Positions 6,316 through 53,756 of a stretch of 64,000 bases of DNA are shown here, piece by piece. Within the stretch, counting starts at the first letter, position 1, and each line of letters opens with the position of its first letter. A program made the translations under genes and the position numbers. The stretch is taken from positions 62,001 through 126,000 of the IMG/VR virus record IMGVR_UViG_3300030616_000016. One strand, written 5' to 3'. Below the pieces are notes generated by a model. That model made no database searches. It was not told the origin of the DNA and was given only the letters and a program-made list of their open reading frames with translations.

Positions 6316-7659
6316 CTAATATATTTCTGTCACTACTTTGTTGCTACGATATACTCTGTCTAACAGATTGATCCATTGTGATACTGGAGTGTCCCAAGTA
6401 TATTTATCAGATATCCTTAGGGCATTTTCGCATTGCCTTTTGTAAAACTCAGGATCACGTAGCTTATCAATTATATTAAGTATACTATCGTAGTTTGGCA
6501 TTGGGCGTGGAATGGAAGTTCCATCTTCTATTAAGCATTCTTTTGGCTGCCAACACAGTCCTGTTTCTTTCATAAACTCTTGTGAGGCTGCAAATTCTGG
6601 AGTAATAGTTGGTACTCCGCATGCCATTGCTTCAAGAGGAGGTAACCCAAAGCCTTCTGTAGCTAGTGACAAATAAACATCAAAGCTGTTAAACACTCTT
6701 GCAAAATCTGCTTCTGGAATACCTCTAAGTACCTGATGGTTGTTGGTTCTTAATACTTTGCCTTCTACATCCCATAAATCTTCCAGGCTAGAGAATCTCC
6801 AACCACGGTCACCTGGAGGACAATGTAGCCAGAATACTAATTCAAAACGTTCTTCTTTTAGCTTGTTAGAATTACAGTTATGACAACGATCATGCCAAAA
6901 CATTGGTTTTTTGTTGAAATAGTACTCGTAATTAATATTTGGAGCACTAATCATATTACATGCAGAACAGCGGCGAATCATATTCTTATCTACCATGCTT
7001 TTAAGTATATGAAACCCAGGTATATACTTTCTTCTCTGATTCCTTCCTACATATCCAATAAGCATTGGATTCTCGTAAGCATCTCTACTTGTACTAAGTA
7101 CTTTTGCTTGTAGTTTAGCTTTTGCTTCGGCAGAAAATGGACGATATGTCTTTTTGTTAACACCAGCTAGAATTGGTTGGCACAAAATGTCTTTATCTAT
7201 TCCTTCTAATTCATGTAGAATATCATACCCGAATTTAGTTACTGGTACAAGTGCATCAGCATAGTTCCATACATCTGTAAATTGGTGTAGCACACAGCCA
7301 TCTATGTATACTTGGGATATCCATTTGAAGTTATAGTTATTCTTCATGCCAATCATATGACTAAGCATCCATGGATCACCACATGTCCATATTATATCTG
7401 GTTTTGTACTCTCGATAACTCTTGGAGCTGTTATCTCTCCATGTTTATCATCCTTGGTTGGTTTAGGTCCATCGGAAGTATTAACCATTTTTGTGTGGTA
7501 TATTTTCCACGGAACTTCTTCTATTGCCTCAGAATGAAACCATCCAATCTGTTCTATCTCATAGTCACCAGTATTATAAATAGGAATGAATATCTCACGA
7601 ATAACTTTTGCGAAACCAGAGTGCATAGCTGCAGAGTCACCAAGGATAAGTATTTTCAT
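6316..7659 (-). CDS. GT-B (family 4-like) glycosyltransferase with zinc-finger insertion
   Basis: Start MKILILGDSA...SGFAKV; GYVGRNQRRK; EGFGLPPLEAMACGVP; CSAC...CHNC insert. Confidence 0.85.
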   Translation of the reverse strand: MKILILGDSAAMHSGFAKVIREIFIPIYNTGDYEIEQIGWFHSEAIEEVPWKIYHTKMVNTSDGPKPTKDDKHGEITAPRVIESTKPDIIWTCGDPWMLSHMIGMKNNYNFKWISQVYIDGCVLHQFTDVWNYADALVPVTKFGYDILHELEGIDKDILCQPILAGVNKKTYRPFSAEAKAKLQAKVLSTSRDAYENPMLIGYVGRNQRRKYIPGFHILKSMVDKNMIRRCSACNMISAPNINYEYYFNKKPMFWHDRCHNCNSNKLKEERFELVFWLHCPPGDRGWRFSSLEDLWDVEGKVLRTNNHQVLRGIPEADFARVFNSFDVYLSLATEGFGLPPLEAMACGVPTITPEFAASQEFMKETGLCWQPKECLIEDGTSIPRPMPNYDSILNIIDKLRDPEFYKRQCENALRISDKYTWDTPVSQWINLLDRVYRSNKVVTEIY

Positions 7660-7862
7660 ATTTGTCTGTCTCCAATATCTAATCTTTTGTCTTGTGGGTA
7701 TCCCTTTATCCATTCATCTGGATATTGTTCTGGTGCAAGACATATTCTTGTTGCATTTTGTTCAATTAATTGCTTGAGGTTATCCTTGTCTTTATCTGAC
7801 AGAGATAGCACTATAGGATCTTTTTCTGAATCAAATATTCTGTCCCTAAATTTAATAAGCAT
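7656..7862 (-). CDS. Small hypothetical protein
   Basis: ORF track; 4-nt overlap with the downstream GT start. Confidence 0.55.
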   Translation of the reverse strand: MLIKFRDRIFDSEKDPIVLSLSDKDKDNLKQLIEQNATRICLAPEQYPDEWIKGYPQDKRLDIGDRQI

Positions 7863-7920
7863 GTTCTTATATTATCTTCCTATTTTAATATGTCAACTAT
7901 TAAATTAATTATTATTATTC

Positions 7921-7949
7921 TTGACTAACAATACTACAAGTGGTAGAAT
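7921..7949 (+). promoter_or_regulatory. sigma70-like promoter for the plus-strand glycosyltransferase
   Basis: TTGACT-17 nt-TAGAAT, 39 nt upstream of ATG 7988. Confidence 0.65.
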
Positions 7950-7987
7950 TATTAGTAATCATATTACATCATTTTGGAGAAAGAACT

Positions 7988-9136
7988 ATGAGAGGAATTC
8001 GTTTTGTTGGAGATGCATTAGCACCATCTGGATACGGCAACGCACTTAGAGATTTAGCAAAACAGTTTCATGAGCTAGGTATCCCATTCTATTTTGATCA
8101 TATAGAACATGACAAGAATAGAGCTGATTTATGTGAGTTTTGGGATAAGCATATGGATAAGTATAGACAAGAAATTCCATATGATATCATTGTAAATGTT
8201 ACTACACCAGAGTTTTATAAGTTTAAGCCAGATAAAAAGGTCGTAGCATGGACCTTCTGGGAAACAACTAAATTTCCTAGAATAGAGATTGGTGGTGGTA
8301 GAGAAGGCGATTGGGTCAAGCAGATGAATAAGCTTGATGAATTTTGGGCGCCAACAACTTTTGTGAAAGATGTTGCTATTGGTTGTGGTGTAGAAACACC
8401 TATTCAGCTGTTACCTTGGCCATGTGTAAGCAAGTATATTAACATTGAGCGTCCAAGATTAGATTCAGCAAGTATCAATAAAGCAATCAAAGATAAATTT
8501 GTTATTGGATCTATAGGTCAGTTTACTGAGCGTAAGAATTTTAGAGACTTTATTATGGCACTTTGTTCTACCTTTAACAAGGAAGAAGATGTCATTGGGC
8601 TTATCAAAACCTATAGATCAAACGATAGCTCGCGTGAAACTAATGTTGTCAGAACGGTGTTATCTGAATGGAAGAAGAGCCTAAACATTCCAGATGCTTG
8701 TAGTTTCTGTGGAGTTCATTCTATTCTCTCCGAGTCCCAGATGGTAGCGTTGCTAGACACTATTGATTTATATGTGTGTACTTCTCGGGGAGAAGGAATG
8801 TCAGGCCCATTAATTCATGCTATGGCAATGGGAAAGCCTGTTATTTCTTCTGACTTTAGTGCTATGAGTGACTTTATTTATGGCGATACATCTTTAAAGG
8901 TTGTTCGATACTGTCTAGAACCTGTTCATTCTATGTCACACATACCTTGGTATGGTCATAGACAAGACTGGGCTAGACTAAACGTTTCTGATATTAGGGA
9001 AGGAATGCGTGAAGGATATGAATTATGGAGAGATGACAGAGATAGATTTGAAGAGATTGGACAGCGTGGAAGGGATTTTGTCAGAAAGATCTACTCTGAC
9101 GAAGCAGTCCAGAAACGAATTAAGGAACTTATCTGA
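7988..9136 (+). CDS. GT-B (family 4-like) glycosyltransferase
   Basis: PSGYGNALR, GSIGQFTERKN, SRGEGMSGPLIHAMAMGKPVI. Confidence 0.85.
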   Translation: MRGIRFVGDALAPSGYGNALRDLAKQFHELGIPFYFDHIEHDKNRADLCEFWDKHMDKYRQEIPYDIIVNVTTPEFYKFKPDKKVVAWTFWETTKFPRIEIGGGREGDWVKQMNKLDEFWAPTTFVKDVAIGCGVETPIQLLPWPCVSKYINIERPRLDSASINKAIKDKFVIGSIGQFTERKNFRDFIMALCSTFNKEEDVIGLIKTYRSNDSSRETNVVRTVLSEWKKSLNIPDACSFCGVHSILSESQMVALLDTIDLYVCTSRGEGMSGPLIHAMAMGKPVISSDFSAMSDFIYGDTSLKVVRYCLEPVHSMSHIPWYGHRQDWARLNVSDIREGMREGYELWRDDRDRFEEIGQRGRDFVRKIYSDEAVQKRIKELI

Positions 9137-9272
9137 TTGCAATATATTAAAGTCAAGTCTTCCTAATAAACAAATTGCATATCTCTTATTAAATGGCTAT
9201 AAGCCTAAAGAGATATGCAATATGTTACGCATTTCTATAAGATCGTTTTATCGTAGACTTAAACAAAACTAA
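9009..9272 (+). CDS. Possible small HTH DNA-binding protein (true start uncertain)
   Basis: C-terminal KQIAYLLLNGYKPKEICNMLRISIRSFYRRL resembles a LuxR/sigma-region-4 HTH; the 5' part overlaps the GT gene. Confidence 0.4.
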   Translation: MKDMNYGEMTEIDLKRLDSVEGILSERSTLTKQSRNELRNLSDCNILKSSLPNKQIAYLLLNGYKPKEICNMLRISIRSFYRRLKQN

Positions 9273-30459: not shown

Positions 30460-31626
30460 CTAATTCATCGAAAATTGCGTTCCATACTGGCTACGTCTTA
30501 CATCTTCTCCAAAGGCTTTAGGTTCCCCTTGCCCAGGGGTACAAAATGCAAAATTCAAAATATTACTAGATGCAAGGGCATCTCTATCGTGTTTGGCACC
30601 ACAAGTGCAAGTCCAATATCTGTCACTTAGCTTAAGATTATTATTTATAGCGCCGCACTGGTTACACATCTTGCTGGATGGTTCAAATCTTCCTATAGTC
30701 AAAACATGCTTTCCATACCAACCTGCCTTATACTCAAGAAAGGTACGAAAAGTATACCATCCAACATCAGAGATAGCCTTGGCCAAACAATGATTCTTCA
30801 CCATTCCAGAAACGTTTAAATCCTCAAGACACACTGCTTGGTTCTCGTCAATGAGCCTTTTGGACAATTTATGCAAAAAATCTTTACGTTGATTAGAAAT
30901 CTTCTCATGTATCAACGCTACCTTCCTACGAGCCTTGTTTCTATTTGAAGAACCTTTCTTCTTCTTTGATAATTGTTTTTGCTTTCTTGCCAATCTTCTT
31001 TCAAGTTTCTTTAGGTATCTTGGATTATCTATTTTCTCGCCTGTTGATAGTGTTGCAAAATGTTTTAATCCAACGTCAACACCTACACTATTATCTCGTT
31101 CAGGATTACATTTGATAGGTAATTCTTCTCCATTGTCAACCAAAATAGAAGCAAAGTATTTCCCAGAAGGAGCCATGAATATAGTTACAGTTTTAATATT
31201 GCCTTCAAATTGTCTATGGAATTTGCATTTGATGCCATCACGGAATTTCATTACATATAGCCTATTATTATCAAAATCCACATTACTTCCTTGTGGAAAT
31301 TGACAAGATTGCTTTTTGAATTTCTTCTTAAATTGAGGATATCTTGCCTGTTTCTTAAAAAACCGCCGGAAAGCATTGTCAAGGTTTCTAAAGGCCATTT
31401 GCAAAGATTGACTATTAACTTCCTTCAGCCAACCATGCTCAGATTTCATATGTTTCAATTGCTTTATCAAATCAAAACAGGAAGGAGATTTCCCCGTTTT
31501 TTGATAAGACTCTGTTTTCTTTTGGAGTCCCAAATTGTATATGAACCGTACACAACCAAAATGCTTCACAAGAAGCTCCTGTTGTTTTTTGTTGGGGTAT
31601 ATTTTGTATTTATATGCTCGTATCAT
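30460..31626 (-). CDS. tnpB: TnpB RNA-guided endonuclease, apparently intact
   Basis: MIRAYKYKIYP HTH; RuvC motifs GVDVGLK, LEDL, DRDALAS; CNQCG/CTCG zinc ribbon. Confidence 0.95.
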   Translation of the reverse strand: MIRAYKYKIYPNKKQQELLVKHFGCVRFIYNLGLQKKTESYQKTGKSPSCFDLIKQLKHMKSEHGWLKEVNSQSLQMAFRNLDNAFRRFFKKQARYPQFKKKFKKQSCQFPQGSNVDFDNNRLYVMKFRDGIKCKFHRQFEGNIKTVTIFMAPSGKYFASILVDNGEELPIKCNPERDNSVGVDVGLKHFATLSTGEKIDNPRYLKKLERRLARKQKQLSKKKKGSSNRNKARRKVALIHEKISNQRKDFLHKLSKRLIDENQAVCLEDLNVSGMVKNHCLAKAISDVGWYTFRTFLEYKAGWYGKHVLTIGRFEPSSKMCNQCGAINNNLKLSDRYWTCTCGAKHDRDALASSNILNFAFCTPGQGEPKAFGEDVRRSQYGTQFSMN

Positions 31627-31635
31627 TATATTTAT

Positions 31636-31664
31636 AGTATAGCACAGGTTTCTGTAAATGTCAA
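31636..31664 (-). promoter_or_regulatory. sigma70 promoter in the IS left end driving tnpB
   Basis: TTGACA-17 nt-TATACT. Confidence 0.75.
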
Positions 31665-31732
31665 GAGAAAAACGCATTCTTATATCCCCATGGCTAAAGC
31701 CAGGGGTCTTACGAATGCACCTTGATAAAAGA

Positions 31733-42447: not shown

Positions 42448-44118
42448 TTAGTTTATAAGGCAAAACAGATACTTCTGAATTCTGTCACTGCCTGTTGCAT
42501 ATTCGTCTATCAGGCGATATAAGAGCTTGTCCCAGCCTTTAGATAGCATCAACTGCATTACAGTGATGTATATCCTTGTTCCAGACCTCTTACCACTATT
42601 TGCATATATTCCATCATCAGATAGCTTACGACTGCATGCATGAGTATTTGTCTGGTGGCTGAACTTATCTAATACTATCCAGAACACTTTCCCAGACCAT
42701 GCCTCAACTGTCTGTCCGTTATAAGTATGCTTTTGTGGCTTGCATTCTTTTATAAGAGCAGATGGTATATTCCCATCTTCTCCTTCTAGAAAGTGAGGAA
42801 CGGGCGCCGGCCCTGATTCCTCTGCAATATTATTAAGCATAGCTTCTACTATCTGACCTGGATTCCTACGCTTTAGAGTTGCAAGAGCGTTGGTTACCAC
42901 TTCTGCTGGTTTGCCATCTATCTTAGGCATTTGCTCGTCTGGTATAATATTTACTATACCTTTATTACCGTGACGATTTGTAATTTTGTCGCCACTTCTG
43001 AGAATATGAAATCTCTCGTATTCGACAATAAGTTTTGTACAAACTGTGTTTGCTACTTTTGTTCTTATCTCACTGATATTAGACAGTTTAGCTTCACGCT
43101 TGACATGACATTTAAGCGTGATTGTTTCTTCTCCATCAGAATAAGAACCAATTATCTGATTTGGTCTTACAATGTCTCCGGCTTTGGCTTCCATCTTTAG
43201 GCTTTGTTTGCACCATCCTGGTACTACGAATGTCTGTTTCTCAGGAATGACACATGTCATTTTTCTAGCTGCTGACTTACTCATAACAATCTGTTCTTTG
43301 TATACACCAGGCATGATTGCATGAACTGTAAGTAAGTGCTTGCCATTAAGATTGTTATCATAATCTTCTGGAAACACCATAGGTTTATCTGGACTAACTA
43401 GCTTGCTGGAAGCCTTGAAATTAGATGCAGTGGTTCTGCGGCGATTATATTCTGGTACAATAAGATTCTTATTGAGTATATCGCAATAAACCCGACCTCT
43501 TTTGGTGAAGCATCCAATATCGTTTATTTTGCATTCTTCAGCCATGTACATTGTGCGACCACAATTCCCCGATGACTGACTTATACTTGTCCAATCAAGA
43601 ATGCCTTCTGTATTGAATGGCATAAATTCATCCGTTCGTTCTTGAAATAGCTCTAATGATATTTTGGGTCCATAGTGAGTAGCTATTCCCTTTACGACAT
43701 GAGATAATCTTGAAGTTTTAAGTAAATTATCGAGCTTCATTTGAGCTGTGGTAGAATCTTCTTGATGTCCGAACATAAAGAAGTCTGACAGTTGTGTAGC
43801 ATATGCTTGCTTAATGAATTTAAGAAGAAGCTCGTATGGTGTTGATAAATATGTGTGATTAATATTCATACATCTGTTATTAAAGATTGGCATTGGATTA
43901 AGTGTATAGCATAATTGCCGGCTTATTCCATTTACAGAAAACATACCCTTGTTATCAATCTTAGGTATATTTAGTTTTACGACTGTTTGCATGCTCTGGG
44001 ATGCCTCTTTAACAAGCATTTTTGTATGAAATAGGTCATCATATTCTTCTATATGACAGTCAACAGGCAAACAATTACATATAGGAAACAATCTTGCAAG
44101 ATGAGACTTATTCATCAT
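42448..44118 (-). CDS. Compact RNA polymerase beta-like subunit
   Basis: GMFSVNG; GDKITNRHGNKGIV...MP...G.PAEVV.N...RRNPGQIVE matches the RpoB GDK..RHGNKG block. Confidence 0.88.
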   Translation of the reverse strand: MMNKSHLARLFPICNCLPVDCHIEEYDDLFHTKMLVKEASQSMQTVVKLNIPKIDNKGMFSVNGISRQLCYTLNPMPIFNNRCMNINHTYLSTPYELLLKFIKQAYATQLSDFFMFGHQEDSTTAQMKLDNLLKTSRLSHVVKGIATHYGPKISLELFQERTDEFMPFNTEGILDWTSISQSSGNCGRTMYMAEECKINDIGCFTKRGRVYCDILNKNLIVPEYNRRRTTASNFKASSKLVSPDKPMVFPEDYDNNLNGKHLLTVHAIMPGVYKEQIVMSKSAARKMTCVIPEKQTFVVPGWCKQSLKMEAKAGDIVRPNQIIGSYSDGEETITLKCHVKREAKLSNISEIRTKVANTVCTKLIVEYERFHILRSGDKITNRHGNKGIVNIIPDEQMPKIDGKPAEVVTNALATLKRRNPGQIVEAMLNNIAEESGPAPVPHFLEGEDGNIPSALIKECKPQKHTYNGQTVEAWSGKVFWIVLDKFSHQTNTHACSRKLSDDGIYANSGKRSGTRIYITVMQLMLSKGWDKLLYRLIDEYATGSDRIQKYLFCLIN

Positions 44119-48643: not shown

Positions 48644-48974
48644 CTTCGTTTACTAAGTGTGGGAATTTATTCACAATTATCTTGCATTGTAGTACTGACT
48701 CAAGTTTTCTGATTGTGTCCTTTGTTGTACATACTTCTAAACCGATTGATCTGTCGCCGCATAAGTAGAACTGATCGTTTGCTTTTAGTAAGGTACCAGC
48801 AGCAAATGCAACGCTCTTATCTTCTTTCTCATCAAGAAGCTCGTCGCTTCTGGTTAAGTGATTAAGATTATATTCAATGAATCGCATATCGCCACCTGTT
48901 GTTTCAAGAAACTTTATAACGATATTGTTCTTTCTATGAATATCTTCCACCGATAGTATCTTTTTATTGTGCAT
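48630..48974 (-). CDS. Hypothetical protein
   Basis: ORF track. Confidence 0.55.
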   Translation of the reverse strand: MHNKKILSVEDIHRKNNIVIKFLETTGGDMRFIEYNLNHLTRSDELLDEKEDKSVAFAAGTLLKANDQFYLCGDRSIGLEVCTTKDTIRKLESVLQCKIIVNKFPHLVNEDEKE

Positions 48975-49158
48975 TACCTTGCTCCTTGAAATCTTTATTG
49001 GTTATCATGTTACCATTTGCTCTATCTTTTGGAGGTACATAATTATGGTTTAGGGCCTCATTTTTTGTAATGCCATGCTCCAATTCTACTCTATTCCAAT
49101 CTATAAGATCTGATATGCTACTTAGAAAACGTACTGAATCATTTTTATCTTGCGACAT
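48964..49158 (-). CDS. Small hypothetical protein
   Basis: ORF track, GGAG RBS. Confidence 0.5.
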   Translation of the reverse strand: MSQDKNDSVRFLSSISDLIDWNRVELEHGITKNEALNHNYVPPKDRANGNMITNKDFKEQGNAQ

Positions 49159-49174
49159 CTTTATCTCCGATAAT

Positions 49175-49534
49175 AATTCATTCTATACATATGGTATATT
49201 TATTCTTCGTGATTCATTCGTTTGGCATGGTATTTCAATTTGCTTGATTCGCTAATGAGTAGTGGTGTTTCAATATTTTTGGCTCATTTTAATACTTTGT
49301 TCTATTCTTTCATATGATTCATTCCTTGGTCCTGGTATTTTAGGGCTGATGGCTCATTCAGTACAATTGGTATTTTCGTGTTCATAATTCATTCTTGTTG
49401 TTTGGTATTTCCACCAAGATGACTCATTCTAATAAAGTGGTTGTTCAAATAAAGTGATTCATTCTTCCACGTTGATGTATTCAATTGCATAGTTCATTCT
49501 TTTCTTGTGATATTTCGTGTAGATTGATTCATTC
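49175..49534 (-). repeat. TIGR-like dual-repeat array 1: 10 units, 35-nt period (one of 36 nt)
   Basis: Plus-strand motif GATTCATTC-like at 49175, 49211, 49246, 49281, 49316, 49351, 49386, 49421, 49456, 49491 and 49526, with a GGTATTTY-like motif 18 nt after each; the intervening segments (9 nt, one of 10) are all different. Confidence 0.92.
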
Positions 49535-50170
49535 ATGAAAACTATGATATTCACTCCAGAATAACTTTTCTCTGTAATCCTTACATGCTTTCATGTATTC
49601 TTCTAAAGTCTGTAGAAATGATTTCTGTTCTTTTCTATTGTATGTTATAGGCATAGGAGGAAATCTTTTTATATATTCCTCTTGCTTTTTCTTTTGTATC
49701 TTCTTACGCCTATTTTTTCTTGCAAGTTTTCTTCTTGCTTTCATGCGTTGTGTTTTATTAAGTTGTACAATTTCACTTGTAATTGTTCTTCTATGAATAA
49801 TCCACGATTTCCTAAGTTCTTGTTTAAATTCCTTAAAGAAATCCCATTCTTCTATAGCTCTGATTTTTCTTTTGAGACGCCTTCTTATTTTAATCCTTGA
49901 TTTTCTAATGTGATTAAGTGTGAATATTTTACTACTTATATCTTTGGGCTCATGTTTATCGAATCCTGGTATCCAGTTATATTCACACCATAGGGTAAGA
50001 TCTTTTGTAATTTGTTGAACATGCTCGTAATCTGGTTTTACATAATATGTTCTATATTCTGGAAGATAATGATTGTTTCTTTGTTCTTCAACGAGTTTGT
50101 TTGCTACAATAATTACGCAGCCTTTTAGTGATTTTATTAGATGTTCTCTAACAGATTTTGTTCGATTCAT
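49529..50170 (-). CDS. Highly basic hypothetical protein whose stop codon lies in the first repeat of array 1
   Basis: 213 aa, K/R-rich; TTT CAT GAA TGA overlaps GAATGAATC. Confidence 0.6.
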   Translation of the reverse strand: MNRTKSVREHLIKSLKGCVIIVANKLVEEQRNNHYLPEYRTYYVKPDYEHVQQITKDLTLWCEYNWIPGFDKHEPKDISSKIFTLNHIRKSRIKIRRRLKRKIRAIEEWDFFKEFKQELRKSWIIHRRTITSEIVQLNKTQRMKARRKLARKNRRKKIQKKKQEEYIKRFPPMPITYNRKEQKSFLQTLEEYMKACKDYREKLFWSEYHSFHE

Positions 50171-50197
50171 TTAGTTTATCCTTATATACAATATGCT

Positions 50198-50590
50198 TTA
50201 GAACAAAAACCTTACGTTTGGATACTCCTTGAGACATTCAAGACCGGGTTTGATTACTTCCTGGAAGATATTATATCTGTTAGCTAGCCCGCCACCTAAT
50301 CTGCTAATTAAGAAGATATAATCATCATATTCTTCTATTCTTCTCTCTAGCTTGGCTAGTTCTGTTTGGAATTTAGGCTTATATTCTTCTGGCTTATAAA
50401 AGCTACCGTCATTGTTATTAGGCGCCTTCTTTGTTACGAATCCATATGTATTTGGCATATCACGCAGCTTAGCAGCTCCGCCATATCCCTTATGTAATAG
50501 ATTGTCGCCAAATACAAATATTTCATATCTATGTCTCTTTAAATAGGCCCTTGTTATTTTTGTCTCACCGCCGCTTCTATTAGATTCCAT
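50198..50590 (-). CDS. Phage protein with FVFGDN...GGAA motif (A1S_2505-like, possible macrodomain-related fold)
   Basis: IFVFGDNLLHKGYGGAAKLR...YGFVTK. Confidence 0.5.
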   Translation of the reverse strand: MESNRSGGETKITRAYLKRHRYEIFVFGDNLLHKGYGGAAKLRDMPNTYGFVTKKAPNNNDGSFYKPEEYKPKFQTELAKLERRIEEYDDYIFLISRLGGGLANRYNIFQEVIKPGLECLKEYPNVRFLF

Positions 50591-50609
50591 TTATATCTCC
50601 CTTAATAAA

Positions 50610-50858
50610 TTTGAGCCGCAATTATTACGCAGGATTCAATTGAGAGCAGAGGTAGTTGGTGTCCAATGTCTGTTGGTCAATCCTGCTTACACATCCCAGA
50701 CTTGTTCAAAGTGTGGTTATGTCCACAAGCTCAATCGGAATGGTGAGATATTTAATTGCAGGAATTGTGGCTGCAAAGGGGATGCTGATTTAAATGCATC
50801 TCGAAATATCTTGAATCTTGGATTGGCTCAGGAGTCTATAGTCCCTGAAAAAACATAA
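50610..50858 (+). pseudogene. C-terminal remnant of a TnpB gene
   Basis: VNPAYTSQTCSKCG...FNCRNCG...DADLNASRNIL; no N-terminal part. Confidence 0.85.
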
Positions 50859-50890
50859 AAGAATATTCCTCTATAAATATTCTAACTATT

Positions 50891-51476
50891 GGTGTTTTCC
50901 TTTTTGTGATTCATTCATTATAACTGATGTTTCTATAAGTGTGATTCATTCTTTAATAATGGTAATTTAATGGCTTTGATTCATTTTTCCCCAATGGTAT
51001 TTCTTATGTAATTATTCATTCTTTATACTTGATATTGTGACTACATTGATTCATTTGTATGGACTGGTATTTCATATTTAGTGATTCACTCACTTATTTT
51101 GGTATTTCCATGGGTGTGGTTCATTCCGGCATGATGGTACTTCTAGGCAATTAATTCATTCTTATAGTCTGGTACATTGTCCTATCTGATTCATTCCTTC
51201 TTTATGGTATTTCGTGACTGATAATTCATTCTGTTCAGCTGGTATTTTGGAGCTTATGATTCGTTCGCAATTAATGGTACTTTCTGATTTATAACTCATT
51301 TTCTCCGAATGGTATTTCAGATTGAGTGATTCATTTGTTCATGTTGAATTATTGTGCAAAGTGATTCATTCTCGCGACATGGTATTTTGGGGCTAATGAT
51401 TCATTCATAATATATGATATTTTTTGGATAATGATTCGTTCATGTTGCATGGTAATTCTAGGACGCTGACTCGCTC
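50891..51476 (-). repeat. TIGR-like dual-repeat array 2: about 17 units with an exact 35-nt period
   Basis: GATTCATTC-like motif at 50908 and every 35 nt up to 51468 (17 copies); GGTATTTY-like motif at 50891 and every 35 nt up to 51451; unique 9-nt segments between. Confidence 0.95.
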
Positions 51477-51525: not shown

Positions 51526-51554
51526 ACAGGGCAAGCCATTGTAGCTTGCCCTGT
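51526..51554 (-). terminator. 11-bp perfect hairpin between the Nop-domain gene and array 2
   Basis: Minus strand ACAGGGCAAGC-TACAATG-GCTTGCCCTGT followed by TTT. Confidence 0.7.
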
Positions 51555-51569
51555 AATATATTCTTCATA

Positions 51570-52580
51570 TTACCAAGGCCAGTTAGGGACCTCGATCTTA
51601 TGAACATGTTTCAAGTGATCGAATGCATAAGGCTGGAAAGGCGCTTCGACGCCATAATGAGCACGATAAGCAACTTCCCACCAGTGAGACAGGAATATCT
51701 TAGTAGCCCATCTCTTACTTCTCATATGAATCTGACTATTGGGGAGCTTGCCTTCGCGATATATTGCCCTCTGTTTATGACCAGGCACTCTTCGAAGAAC
51801 TTCTCGTGCAATATGCGCATATTCCTTGGCTTCATTCTTACGCGACTCGATAATCTTCCTTTCAACAACAAGATGTCCATAGAGATCTTTTGGATTGTTG
51901 CATGTCATATTGAAAGACTCACCGATTTTCCAGCAGAGTGTTTTCAGTTCTGAATTCCAGGGACGCATTGACAGACCTCTGTAAAGCGTCTTGCCTGTAT
52001 GAACTCCGCCTCCTTTCTGTAATGAGAGACGAAGTGCGGTAGCTGCTTTGATTCCTCCGGCTTCTTGTATCGCATTTGCTACCTTAATAGCATCTTCTTC
52101 AGATACTCTTCTTGTACTATCAGGATTAATACCGGCTTCGTCAACCATGATTTCTCTTGTAACTTTCTTGCCAAGCCAGCGCTTTCCGTCTACAAGACCA
52201 GCATAGCTATAGATATGTCCTGGAGTCTTAGCTTTGTCCATATCTATATGGGCAATAAGACCGGCGCTGATAACAGGGCCAATACCTACAACTGATTGAG
52301 CCCATGTACCAATTTTTGTTGATAATGAGAAATGATTGAGCGCGAGCTTCACCTGATTCTCAAGACGCTCCGCATTCTTAAGAAACCAATCAAGCACTTC
52401 CATTGGAGGGTCGTCTACGCCCTGCTCTGCTGCTCTAAGCTGACCAGCAAGCCTGATTCTCTGGTTCTGCATGGTATAATAACTATCTACCAGATAGCGG
52501 GCTTCCTGACGCGTAATCTTTCTTGACGCGTTTCTTATGTCTTTACCTACTCTTTCAATAATTTCTTCAATAGCCATCAC
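51570..52580 (-). CDS. IS110/Nop-domain protein lacking a RuvC domain (TasA-like RNA-guided DNA binder)
   Basis: Coiled coil YYTMQNQRIRLAGQLR; HhH-like SVVGIGPVISAGLIAHI; IYSYAGL; RPWNSELKTLCWKIGESF; QIHMRSKRWATKIFL; no DEDD N-terminus and no SG serine after YAGL. Confidence 0.8.
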   Translation of the reverse strand: MMAIEEIIERVGKDIRNASRKITRQEARYLVDSYYTMQNQRIRLAGQLRAAEQGVDDPPMEVLDWFLKNAERLENQVKLALNHFSLSTKIGTWAQSVVGIGPVISAGLIAHIDMDKAKTPGHIYSYAGLVDGKRWLGKKVTREIMVDEAGINPDSTRRVSEEDAIKVANAIQEAGGIKAATALRLSLQKGGGVHTGKTLYRGLSMRPWNSELKTLCWKIGESFNMTCNNPKDLYGHLVVERKIIESRKNEAKEYAHIAREVLRRVPGHKQRAIYREGKLPNSQIHMRSKRWATKIFLSHWWEVAYRAHYGVEAPFQPYAFDHLKHVHKIEVPNWPW

Positions 52581-52598: not shown

Positions 52599-53756
52599 TT
52601 AAAGCATGTTTACCATGCTATTATATAGACCCGCATACTCTTGCGGGCCTGAACGTTTGCCTGGGTTATCGGACAATTTAACAGTAGGAACAAAGCCCTC
52701 TCTATTATATGAACAGGCAGTCATTTTAATAACGATATTAAGAGGATCTACTCCAACATCATTAGTGAAATTAGTGCCTATACCATATACTGTTTTGATT
52801 CTTTTGTTTACATATTCTTCTATCTCAAGAACCTTGTCAACATCAAGAGAGTCTGAGAATACAATGGTTTTTGTACTTGGATCTATACCAAGGCTCTCAT
52901 AGTGTTTTATTATTTTGTCAGCAAATTCCATAGGATCGCCTGAATCTTGCCTTACACCATCCCAAAGACTCGCTCTGACATAATCAAATGATCTTAGAAA
53001 CCAATCAGTTGTATAAGTATCAGTAAGCGCTATGCCTAGTTTGCCCTTATATGTCTCTGCCCATTTATCAAGGGCAATAGAAGTAGCCATTTGAGGACCA
53101 AATATGGCGCCGTGGAACATAAACCACTCATGAGCTTGTGTGCCAATTGGTCGCATGTTATGAGTGGTTGCTAATAATACATTACTTGTACCAAGACAGT
53201 ATTGTGAAATTTGTTTTCTTGTAGACATGTCATCCAGAAGTTCATTCTGTACACCAAATGAAAATCTGCGTCTGGTTCCGAATTCTATGAAGTTGACTTT
53301 GTGCTTGATGAGTTTGTCAACCTTGTCTACATTTGTTTTATATCTTTCTTTCCTGAACTTAGGCGCTATACCAAGCTTAAGATAGTATAGCTCGCTAATA
53401 GCCGCTAATAGCGGTACTTCCCATAGTATAGCAGAATACCATGGCCCGCATATTTCTACTTTGAGATCTTCGTCTGTTTGTGTAACACATACTTCATTAG
53501 GATTGAATCGATGATGTCGTAGGTATTCTAGATATGTTGAATCAAAGACTCCAATCTTTCGCATAGCTGTAATACTATCGTCTATAAAGTATGTATGTTG
53601 CATATGATCAATAAACTCATTTAATTCCTTTTGCATACTTTCAGGGAACTCAGTCTTTGTTCTTGACTTGAATTCATATTTTACTAATGCAGATGGATAG
53701 TGTTTAAGTACTGCATTTTGCATGGCGAACTTATAGAAATCATTGTCTGCTGCCAT
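52599..53756 (-). CDS. pncB: Nicotinate phosphoribosyltransferase
   Basis: D.YKFAM, LWEVPLLA, EFGTRRRFS, GTSNV, GTQAHEW, LTDTY, GVRQDSGDP, VFSDSL, GIGT, VKLSDNPGK. Confidence 0.93.
   Translation of the reverse strand: MAADNDFYKFAMQNAVLKHYPSALVKYEFKSRTKTEFPESMQKELNEFIDHMQHTYFIDDSITAMRKIGVFDSTYLEYLRHHRFNPNEVCVTQTDEDLKVEICGPWYSAILWEVPLLAAISELYYLKLGIAPKFRKERYKTNVDKVDKLIKHKVNFIEFGTRRRFSFGVQNELLDDMSTRKQISQYCLGTSNVLLATTHNMRPIGTQAHEWFMFHGAIFGPQMATSIALDKWAETYKGKLGIALTDTYTTDWFLRSFDYVRASLWDGVRQDSGDPMEFADKIIKHYESLGIDPSTKTIVFSDSLDVDKVLEIEEYVNKRIKTVYGIGTNFTNDVGVDPLNIVIKMTACSYNREGFVPTVKLSDNPGKRSGPQEYAGLYNSMVNML

Follow-up and report, generated by a model that had tools for sequence, protein, structure and literature searches.

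Dual-repeat TIGR-TasA systems are the closest described counterparts of the locus analyzed here. Their arrays can be found upstream, downstream or on both flanks of tas (PMC12045711; bioRxiv 10.64898/2026.09.09.750476), and an ending formed by a truncated edge repeat plus a terminator is typical, although not defining, of TIGR arrays (PMC12045711). Guide precursors of dual-repeat systems are cleaved inside the edge repeat by Tas, which relies on a C-terminal Tyr/His pair, Y289/H296 in SpTasH (PMC13421893; bioRxiv 10.64898/2026.09.09.750476), and TasA proteins act as RNA-guided transcriptional repressors (bioRxiv 10.64898/2026.09.09.750476). The kinship of Tas proteins with IS110-type recombinases was described by Faure et al. 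(PMC12045711). Genes between arrays, as well as arrays around or between genes, have been described for tasParB loci (PMC12045711).

The array considered here, which we refer to as array 1, is a further member of the known TIGR-Tas family, which was described in 2025 and for which thousands of loci were catalogued in 2026. The locus shares with dual-repeat TIGR-TasA systems (PMC12045711; bioRxiv 10.64898/2026.09.09.750476) a nuclease-less Nop-domain effector, a phage host, two alternating 8-10-nt repeats ending in CA or CCA (box C-like), two spacers of about 9 nt, arrays on the tas strand and a conserved C-terminal Tyr/His pair. It differs from them in having a unit of 35 rather than 36 nt, AT-rich repeats (GAAUGAAUCA / GAAAUACCA) and a second array that stands at a distance of 1.35 kb, beyond a TnpB remnant and two intact genes, begins within a stop codon and lacks a terminator. 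As in tasParB-tasA operons (PMC12045711; locus L002 below), a gene of about 220 aa stands between sub-arrays with the same repeats and an array begins within a few bases of a stop codon; however, the intervening gene, ORF213, has no similarity to the L002 ORF and does not recur, whereas the L002-type ORF does (locus L143, 33% identity). Other parallels can also be drawn. Multi-array CRISPR loci likewise combine one effector gene with several arrays that have a common repeat, different spacers and mobile-element debris between them, but here the spacers are split, no PAM is involved, the protein family is different and there are no adaptation genes. Clustered or mRNA-embedded box C/D snoRNAs are comparable in their binding by a Nop-domain protein, their two-spacer layout and their release from a coding transcript, a step that is predicted here; they differ in that the present guides would have DNA targets and come with no fibrillarin or L7Ae partner and no K-turn flanks. 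Both multiple arrays at a single tas gene and genes lying between sub-arrays have been recorded before, and what is unusual at this locus is only that array 1 is inserted into an operon and overlaps a stop codon.

The window, by which we mean the whole 64-kb stretch of DNA that was analyzed, comprises positions 62,001-126,000 of IMGVR_UViG_3300030616_000016, a viral contig of 231,647 bp recovered from a marine sediment metagenome. Three other assemblies, namely an ENA contig (231,593 bp), a contig from Logan and a sister sample at JGI, carry the region with 100% identity, and the two-array region is therefore not an assembly artefact. A near-identical strain of the phage was present in a run from a different study, DNA sequencing runs bore out the structure of the region, and no GenBank phage resembled the 64-kb window. 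Every gene around both arrays is on the minus strand. Following that strand, a nicotinate phosphoribosyltransferase gene (NAD salvage; 52599..53756, -) lies directly upstream of tas (51570..52580, -), which encodes a TasA-type protein of 336 aa from a GTG codon, or probably 335 aa from the ATG at 52577. Directly 3′ of the tas stop codon there is a strong terminator-like hairpin followed by UUUU (51526..51554, -; -22.7 kcal/mol, z = -5.96 versus shuffles), and then array 2 (50881..51476, -), with 17 TIGR units of 35 nt, which ends in a truncated edge repeat, a weak AT-rich hairpin and a U-run (50846..50884, -; fold -10.9 kcal/mol, z = -2.1). Convergent with array 2 is a 72-codon remnant of a TnpB C-terminus (50640..50858, +) that retains only the TNB zinc ribbon (Pfam PF07282, 1.7e-18). 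The minus-strand run continues with a DUF7831 gene (130 aa; 50198..50590, -; Pfam PF25176, 5.7e-19), the basic orphan ORF213 (49529..50170, -), array 1 (49174..49534, -), with 10 TIGR units and a closing full edge repeat, and ORF64 (64 aa; 48964..49158, -), which heads a run of small overlapping ORFs; the same genes are called in the ENA record. The window further contains an intact TnpB gene (405 aa; 30460..31677, -; HTH_OrfB_IS605, OrfB_IS605 and TNB domains) 20 kb from the remnant, and a gene for a 556-aa RNA polymerase beta-like protein (42448..44118, -; Rpb2 domain 6 match, 2.4e-13). Subunits of multisubunit RNA polymerases are encoded by jumbo phages.

The 336-aa protein matched NCBIfam NF052498 (TIGR-Tas system RNA-guided endonuclease, TIGR_Tas_endo) with 158.8 bits, the cut-off being 100. 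A Tas family profile that we built from this protein and 26 relatives matched the solved TasR (PDB 9mty, 1e-22), TasH (3.7e-10) and IS621/IS110 recombinases. The NCBIfam match begins at about residue 27, and residues ~31 and ~34 align to TasR 123 and TasH 83, respectively; this start so close to the N-terminus indicates that there is no N-terminal nuclease domain and hence that the protein is of the TasA type. No nuclease domain (HNH, RuvC) was detected N-terminal to the Nop domain, and no Pfam nuclease family was matched. Near the other end of the protein, position 318 is Tyr in 22 of 27 relatives and position 325, seven residues away, is His in all 27. From position and spacing, rather than from direct alignment, we infer that Y318/H325 is the counterpart of SpTasH Y289/H296. 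Eight of the nine tas SNPs in a second sample are synonymous, which indicates that the gene is under purifying selection. There is one tas copy in the window, and one tas locus was returned for the whole contig.

On the minus strand, the unit of both arrays reads AAUGAAUCA-N9-AAAUACCA-N9, and the repeat consensus common to both is (G)AATGAATCA for the edge repeat and (G)AAATACCA for the loop repeat. Because G is frequent as the last base of a spacer, an alternative reading of the repeats is GAAUGAAUCA and GAAAUACCA, with spacers of 8 nt. Array 1 has edge repeats of 9-10 nt, loop repeats of 8-9 nt and spacers of 8-9 nt, and holds a strict 35-nt register over its ten units, apart from one extra base in unit 10; its closing edge repeat is GAATGAATTA at 49183..49174. 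When scored with a weight matrix derived from array 2 only, the array-1 units reached 14.4-24.9 bits, the best score elsewhere in the window being 11.6 bits, with no background position above 12 bits (both strands, 128 kb). Autocorrelation revealed no third array within the 64-kb window, only arrays 1 and 2, which are separated by 1,346 nt (50880..49535). All 54 spacers of the two arrays differ, and their likeness is no greater than that of shuffled spacers. The arrays are equally well kept in repeat sequence (2.1 versus 1.65 repeat mismatches per unit, p = 0.37). Both repeats open with (G)AA, and their last two bases are nearly always CA, as UCA in the edge and CCA in the loop, in agreement with the CCA ends of the repeats in relatives; the final A, reminiscent of box C, is present in both repeats of every unit, and the C before it is absent only from two edge repeats. 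The edge repeat contains the published UG box D, which is not clear in the loop repeat, the loop repeats of array 1 units 2 and 7 are poor, and no known RNA family was matched in Rfam. These results bear out what the sequence-only reading had described, namely ten more units with the motifs and period of array 2 at a distance of about 1.4 kb, new variable segments throughout (54 of 54 spacers), a tnpB remnant between the arrays (PF07282), a first repeat overlapping the TGA of a Lys/Arg-rich 213-aa ORF (49531..49529), a Tas-like gene, now supported by NF052498 and by the TasR and TasH profile matches, and a total of about 27 guides (17 + 10).

Two individual units deserve mention. In array 1 unit 3 (49463-49429, -), spacer A (CTTTATTTG) and spacer B (CTTTATTAG) differ at one base, so that this guide would be directed at a DNA site that is almost a palindrome. 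In array 2, the first edge repeat (51476-51467, -) is degenerate, and its sequence, GAGCGAGTCA, resembles the GC-rich consensus seen in related phages (GAGCGAGCCA) more than the local AT-rich one.

Of the 370 nt that separate ORF213 from ORF64, 361 belong to array 1. At its start, the UGA of ORF213 coincides with positions 4-6 of the first edge repeat (49534..49525), and at its end 15 nt, which include a GGAG, separate the last edge repeat from the ATG of ORF64. The gap between the DUF7831 gene and ORF213 is 27 nt, and the ORFs downstream of ORF64 overlap. A fold test gave no hairpin terminator after array 1, which ends in a full edge repeat; the truncated-edge-plus-terminator ending is seen, weakly, in array 2 and has no equivalent in array 1. 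Because array 1 fills the intergenic space, is followed by no hairpin and has neighbors that overlap or are spaced by 27 nt or less, it most likely shares a transcript with its flanking genes.

We consider it probable that array 1 is a genuine dual-repeat TIGR array of the phage's single TasA system, co-transcribed with its neighbors and loaded in trans, and that ORF213 and the DUF7831 gene are passengers. The repeats, period and strand of array 1 are the same as those of the tas-adjacent array 2, and service in trans follows from there being only one tas gene in the window and one returned for the contig. Array 1 would be transcribed on the minus strand within a DUF7831-ORF213-array-ORF64 unit, and the transcript would be cut within the edge repeats by TasA's own Y318/H325. 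The resulting 35-nt tigRNAs would load dimers of the TasA made from the upstream tas gene, and the two spacers of about 9 nt in each tigRNA would pair with opposite strands of a DNA target. The expected output is binding and transcriptional blocking rather than cutting, since this TasA is nuclease-less and RNA-guided repression of transcription is known for TasA proteins. The ten guides of array 1 would add to the 17 of array 2 to give 27, most of them with targets outside the 64-kb window. As the expected TasA cut lies near the middle of the edge repeat and the UGA is at positions 4-6, it is conceivable that processing of array 1 removes the stop codon of ORF213, yielding a non-stop ORF213 mRNA, and detaches ORF64 and the genes after it, although we think it rather improbable that this happens. 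If it does, TasA abundance would set the fate of the neighboring genes, and the mRNA-embedded array would be a guide source and a cis-regulatory switch at the same time.

Some features of the locus count against a co-transcribed array 1 loaded in trans. One is the strong terminator between tas and array 2, together with the weak one after array 2; array 2 may need either read-through past the strong hairpin or a promoter of its own in the next 50 nt. A scan for sigma-70 promoters was uninformative, as the phage encodes an RNA-polymerase beta-like protein, and its promoters may not be of the sigma-70 type. The other features are the atypical ending of array 1, the poor loops of its units 2 and 7, and the failure to find a target for any guide. 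To our knowledge, the targets of TIGR-Tas guides are usually not identified. We compared all 27 guides with both strands of the window, allowing two tandem geometries, spacer lengths of 8 or 9 nt and gap lengths of 0-7 nt, and found no self-targets within these 64 kb beyond the rate of mismatched spacer-pair controls. The best match in the window was that of array 1 unit 8, with 16 of 18 bases at 52564..52547 (-), in codons 6-11 of tas. A match of this level was reached by 1% of control pairs, about 0.3 such matches being expected; it is not significant, and its location at the 5′ end of tas is suggestive of autoregulation. If all guides were self-directed, about seven matches would be expected in the window, which represents 28% of the genome. 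Since no guide matched better than chance in 64 kb, a general self-regulation of the phage genome by the guides is unlikely.

Alternatively, array 1 may be a stranded relic that was cut off by TnpB insertion and decay and by the arrival of the DUF7831 gene and ORF213, and that is now silent or unloaded. The TnpB remnant between the arrays indicates that the spot was rearranged by an IS605-type element; it lacks the HTH and OrfB_IS605/RuvC parts, no further TnpB frame lies upstream of it and it gave no Rfam match, while the intact TnpB elsewhere in the window means that this phage genome also contains IS605-type elements in intact form. Array 2 closes canonically and does not break off mid-array, which argues mildly against the simple splitting of one array, and array 1 itself starts and ends with complete edge repeats, which also bears against a simple split. 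The absence of a terminator of its own and the degenerate units 2 and 7 would fit such a relic; against this, the repeats of array 1 are kept as well as those of array 2 (p = 0.37), all ten units follow one another in 35-nt register without a break, and the terminal A is found everywhere, with CA in all but two edge repeats. The G+C content of ORF213 (0.30), which is below that of tas (0.44), speaks for rearrangement and for the relic reading. However, the packed run of same-strand genes makes transcription of array 1 hard to avoid, and we regard a silent or unloaded relic as unlikely.

We next consider the genes that accompany arrays at other Tas loci. No phage Tas with more than 50% identity was found in IMG/VR or the JGI metagenomes, the best other Tas being 50% identical, and arrays with the AT-rich repeat variant occurred in no other IMG/VR contig. 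About 68 of 80 IMG/VR loci with Tas relatives have arrays, with a period of 33-38 nt (nearly all 34-36 nt); in almost every case these adjoin tas on the same strand, and where a consensus resolves, each locus has repeats of its own, closing in CCA or CA. Genes between sub-arrays, or between tas and the array, were seen in four loci, L002, L072, L043 and L038, and such cases count in favor of rearrangement at the present locus. The first of these (6949-8981) holds the closest Tas relative, from the same sample and 50% identical, and is arranged as three units, a 234-aa ORF, five units and tasA. This ORF carries a ParB-like DGFHR (DGxHR) motif, and an ORF 33% identical to it follows tas in L143; it is probably the published tasParB, a Pfam and PDB sequence search having given no confirmation. 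On a 188-kb viral contig (L038, 5472-12870), about 100 TIGR units in six sub-arrays flank a tas of 30% identity on both sides, and the gaps, which measure 500-750 nt, contain open reading frames. Between tas and the array, L072 has a GIY-YIG/T5orf172-like ORF (7321-8067) and L043 a staphylococcal-nuclease-like one (8871-9257), both named from motifs alone. Such motif-named neighbors suggest that the tas-array junction has repeatedly taken in mobile or nuclease genes.

The sequence-only reading had proposed ORF213 as a candidate accessory factor (processing, acquisition or co-effector), and a dedicated protein coupled to array 1 in the manner of TasParB is the second rival explanation. ORF213 is a genuine gene: an open frame of its length would arise by chance with p ~4e-9 in DNA of such composition, it is preceded by an AAGGA ribosome-binding site, and of its two SNPs in the second strain one is synonymous and the other changes Val to Ile. 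We also considered ORF213 as a decayed array, and rejected this candidate, as no residual units and no 35-nt periodicity were found inside it. In favor of an accessory role, the stop codon of ORF213 lies within the first edge repeat of array 1, the L002 arrangement with its DGxHR ORF between sub-arrays offers a precedent (PMC12045711), and the 213-aa product is very basic (pI 10.1, Lys + Arg 25%) and, in an AlphaFold2 model made without an alignment, all-helical, which would be compatible with nucleic-acid binding; the model is, however, of low confidence (pLDDT 60.6, pTM 0.26). The wider comparisons weigh against such a role. A word-indexed search of 5.8 billion clustered proteins recovered ORF213 itself only, and a full HMMER search of 1.84 billion representatives added one low-complexity match. 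There was no family in Pfam, PHROGs or NCBIfam, in agreement with its earlier description as an ORF of unknown family, and the protein atlas gave no useful lead. Comparison by hhalign with the Tas profile and with the L002-type ORF gave a probability of 0.2% each. Co-occurrence of the 213-aa ORF with Tas genes, which had been suggested as a check, was not observed: neither ORF213 nor the DUF7831 protein had a homologue in about 155 other Tas loci, and ORF213 had none in the 164 loci that were fetched. TasA, moreover, has processing residues of its own. The earlier interpretation therefore stands in part. Array 1 has the repeats and strand of the tas-adjacent array, as expected for a guide array of the Tas system, whereas the accessory-factor idea found no support in an orphan that is unrelated to Tas and linked to the array by adjacency, and we hold a dedicated accessory role to be very unlikely.

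That the repeats act at the DNA level, for instance as iterons or as sequences bound by a partition or replication protein, and are not guides is barely credible. The repeats are short and regularly spaced in a phage, and a gene with a ParB-like motif accompanies the arrays in L002. Against this reading, about 68 of 80 related loci combine a Tas gene with units built in this way, each locus with repeats of its own; the order of edge, spacer A, loop and spacer B is the published one, for which transcription and processing have been shown (PMC12045711); and the variable segments are as long as the repeats, which is untypical of iterons.

The locus reveals no new component of the system, and its tempting accessory gene is an unlinked orphan. 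What it offers is a clear case from nature in which one nuclease-less TasA goes with two separated arrays and 27 guides in a phage of jumbo size (231 kb). It bears on how TIGR arrays are transcribed, whether from a promoter of their own or by processing from longer mRNAs, and on how these arrays grow, split and move.
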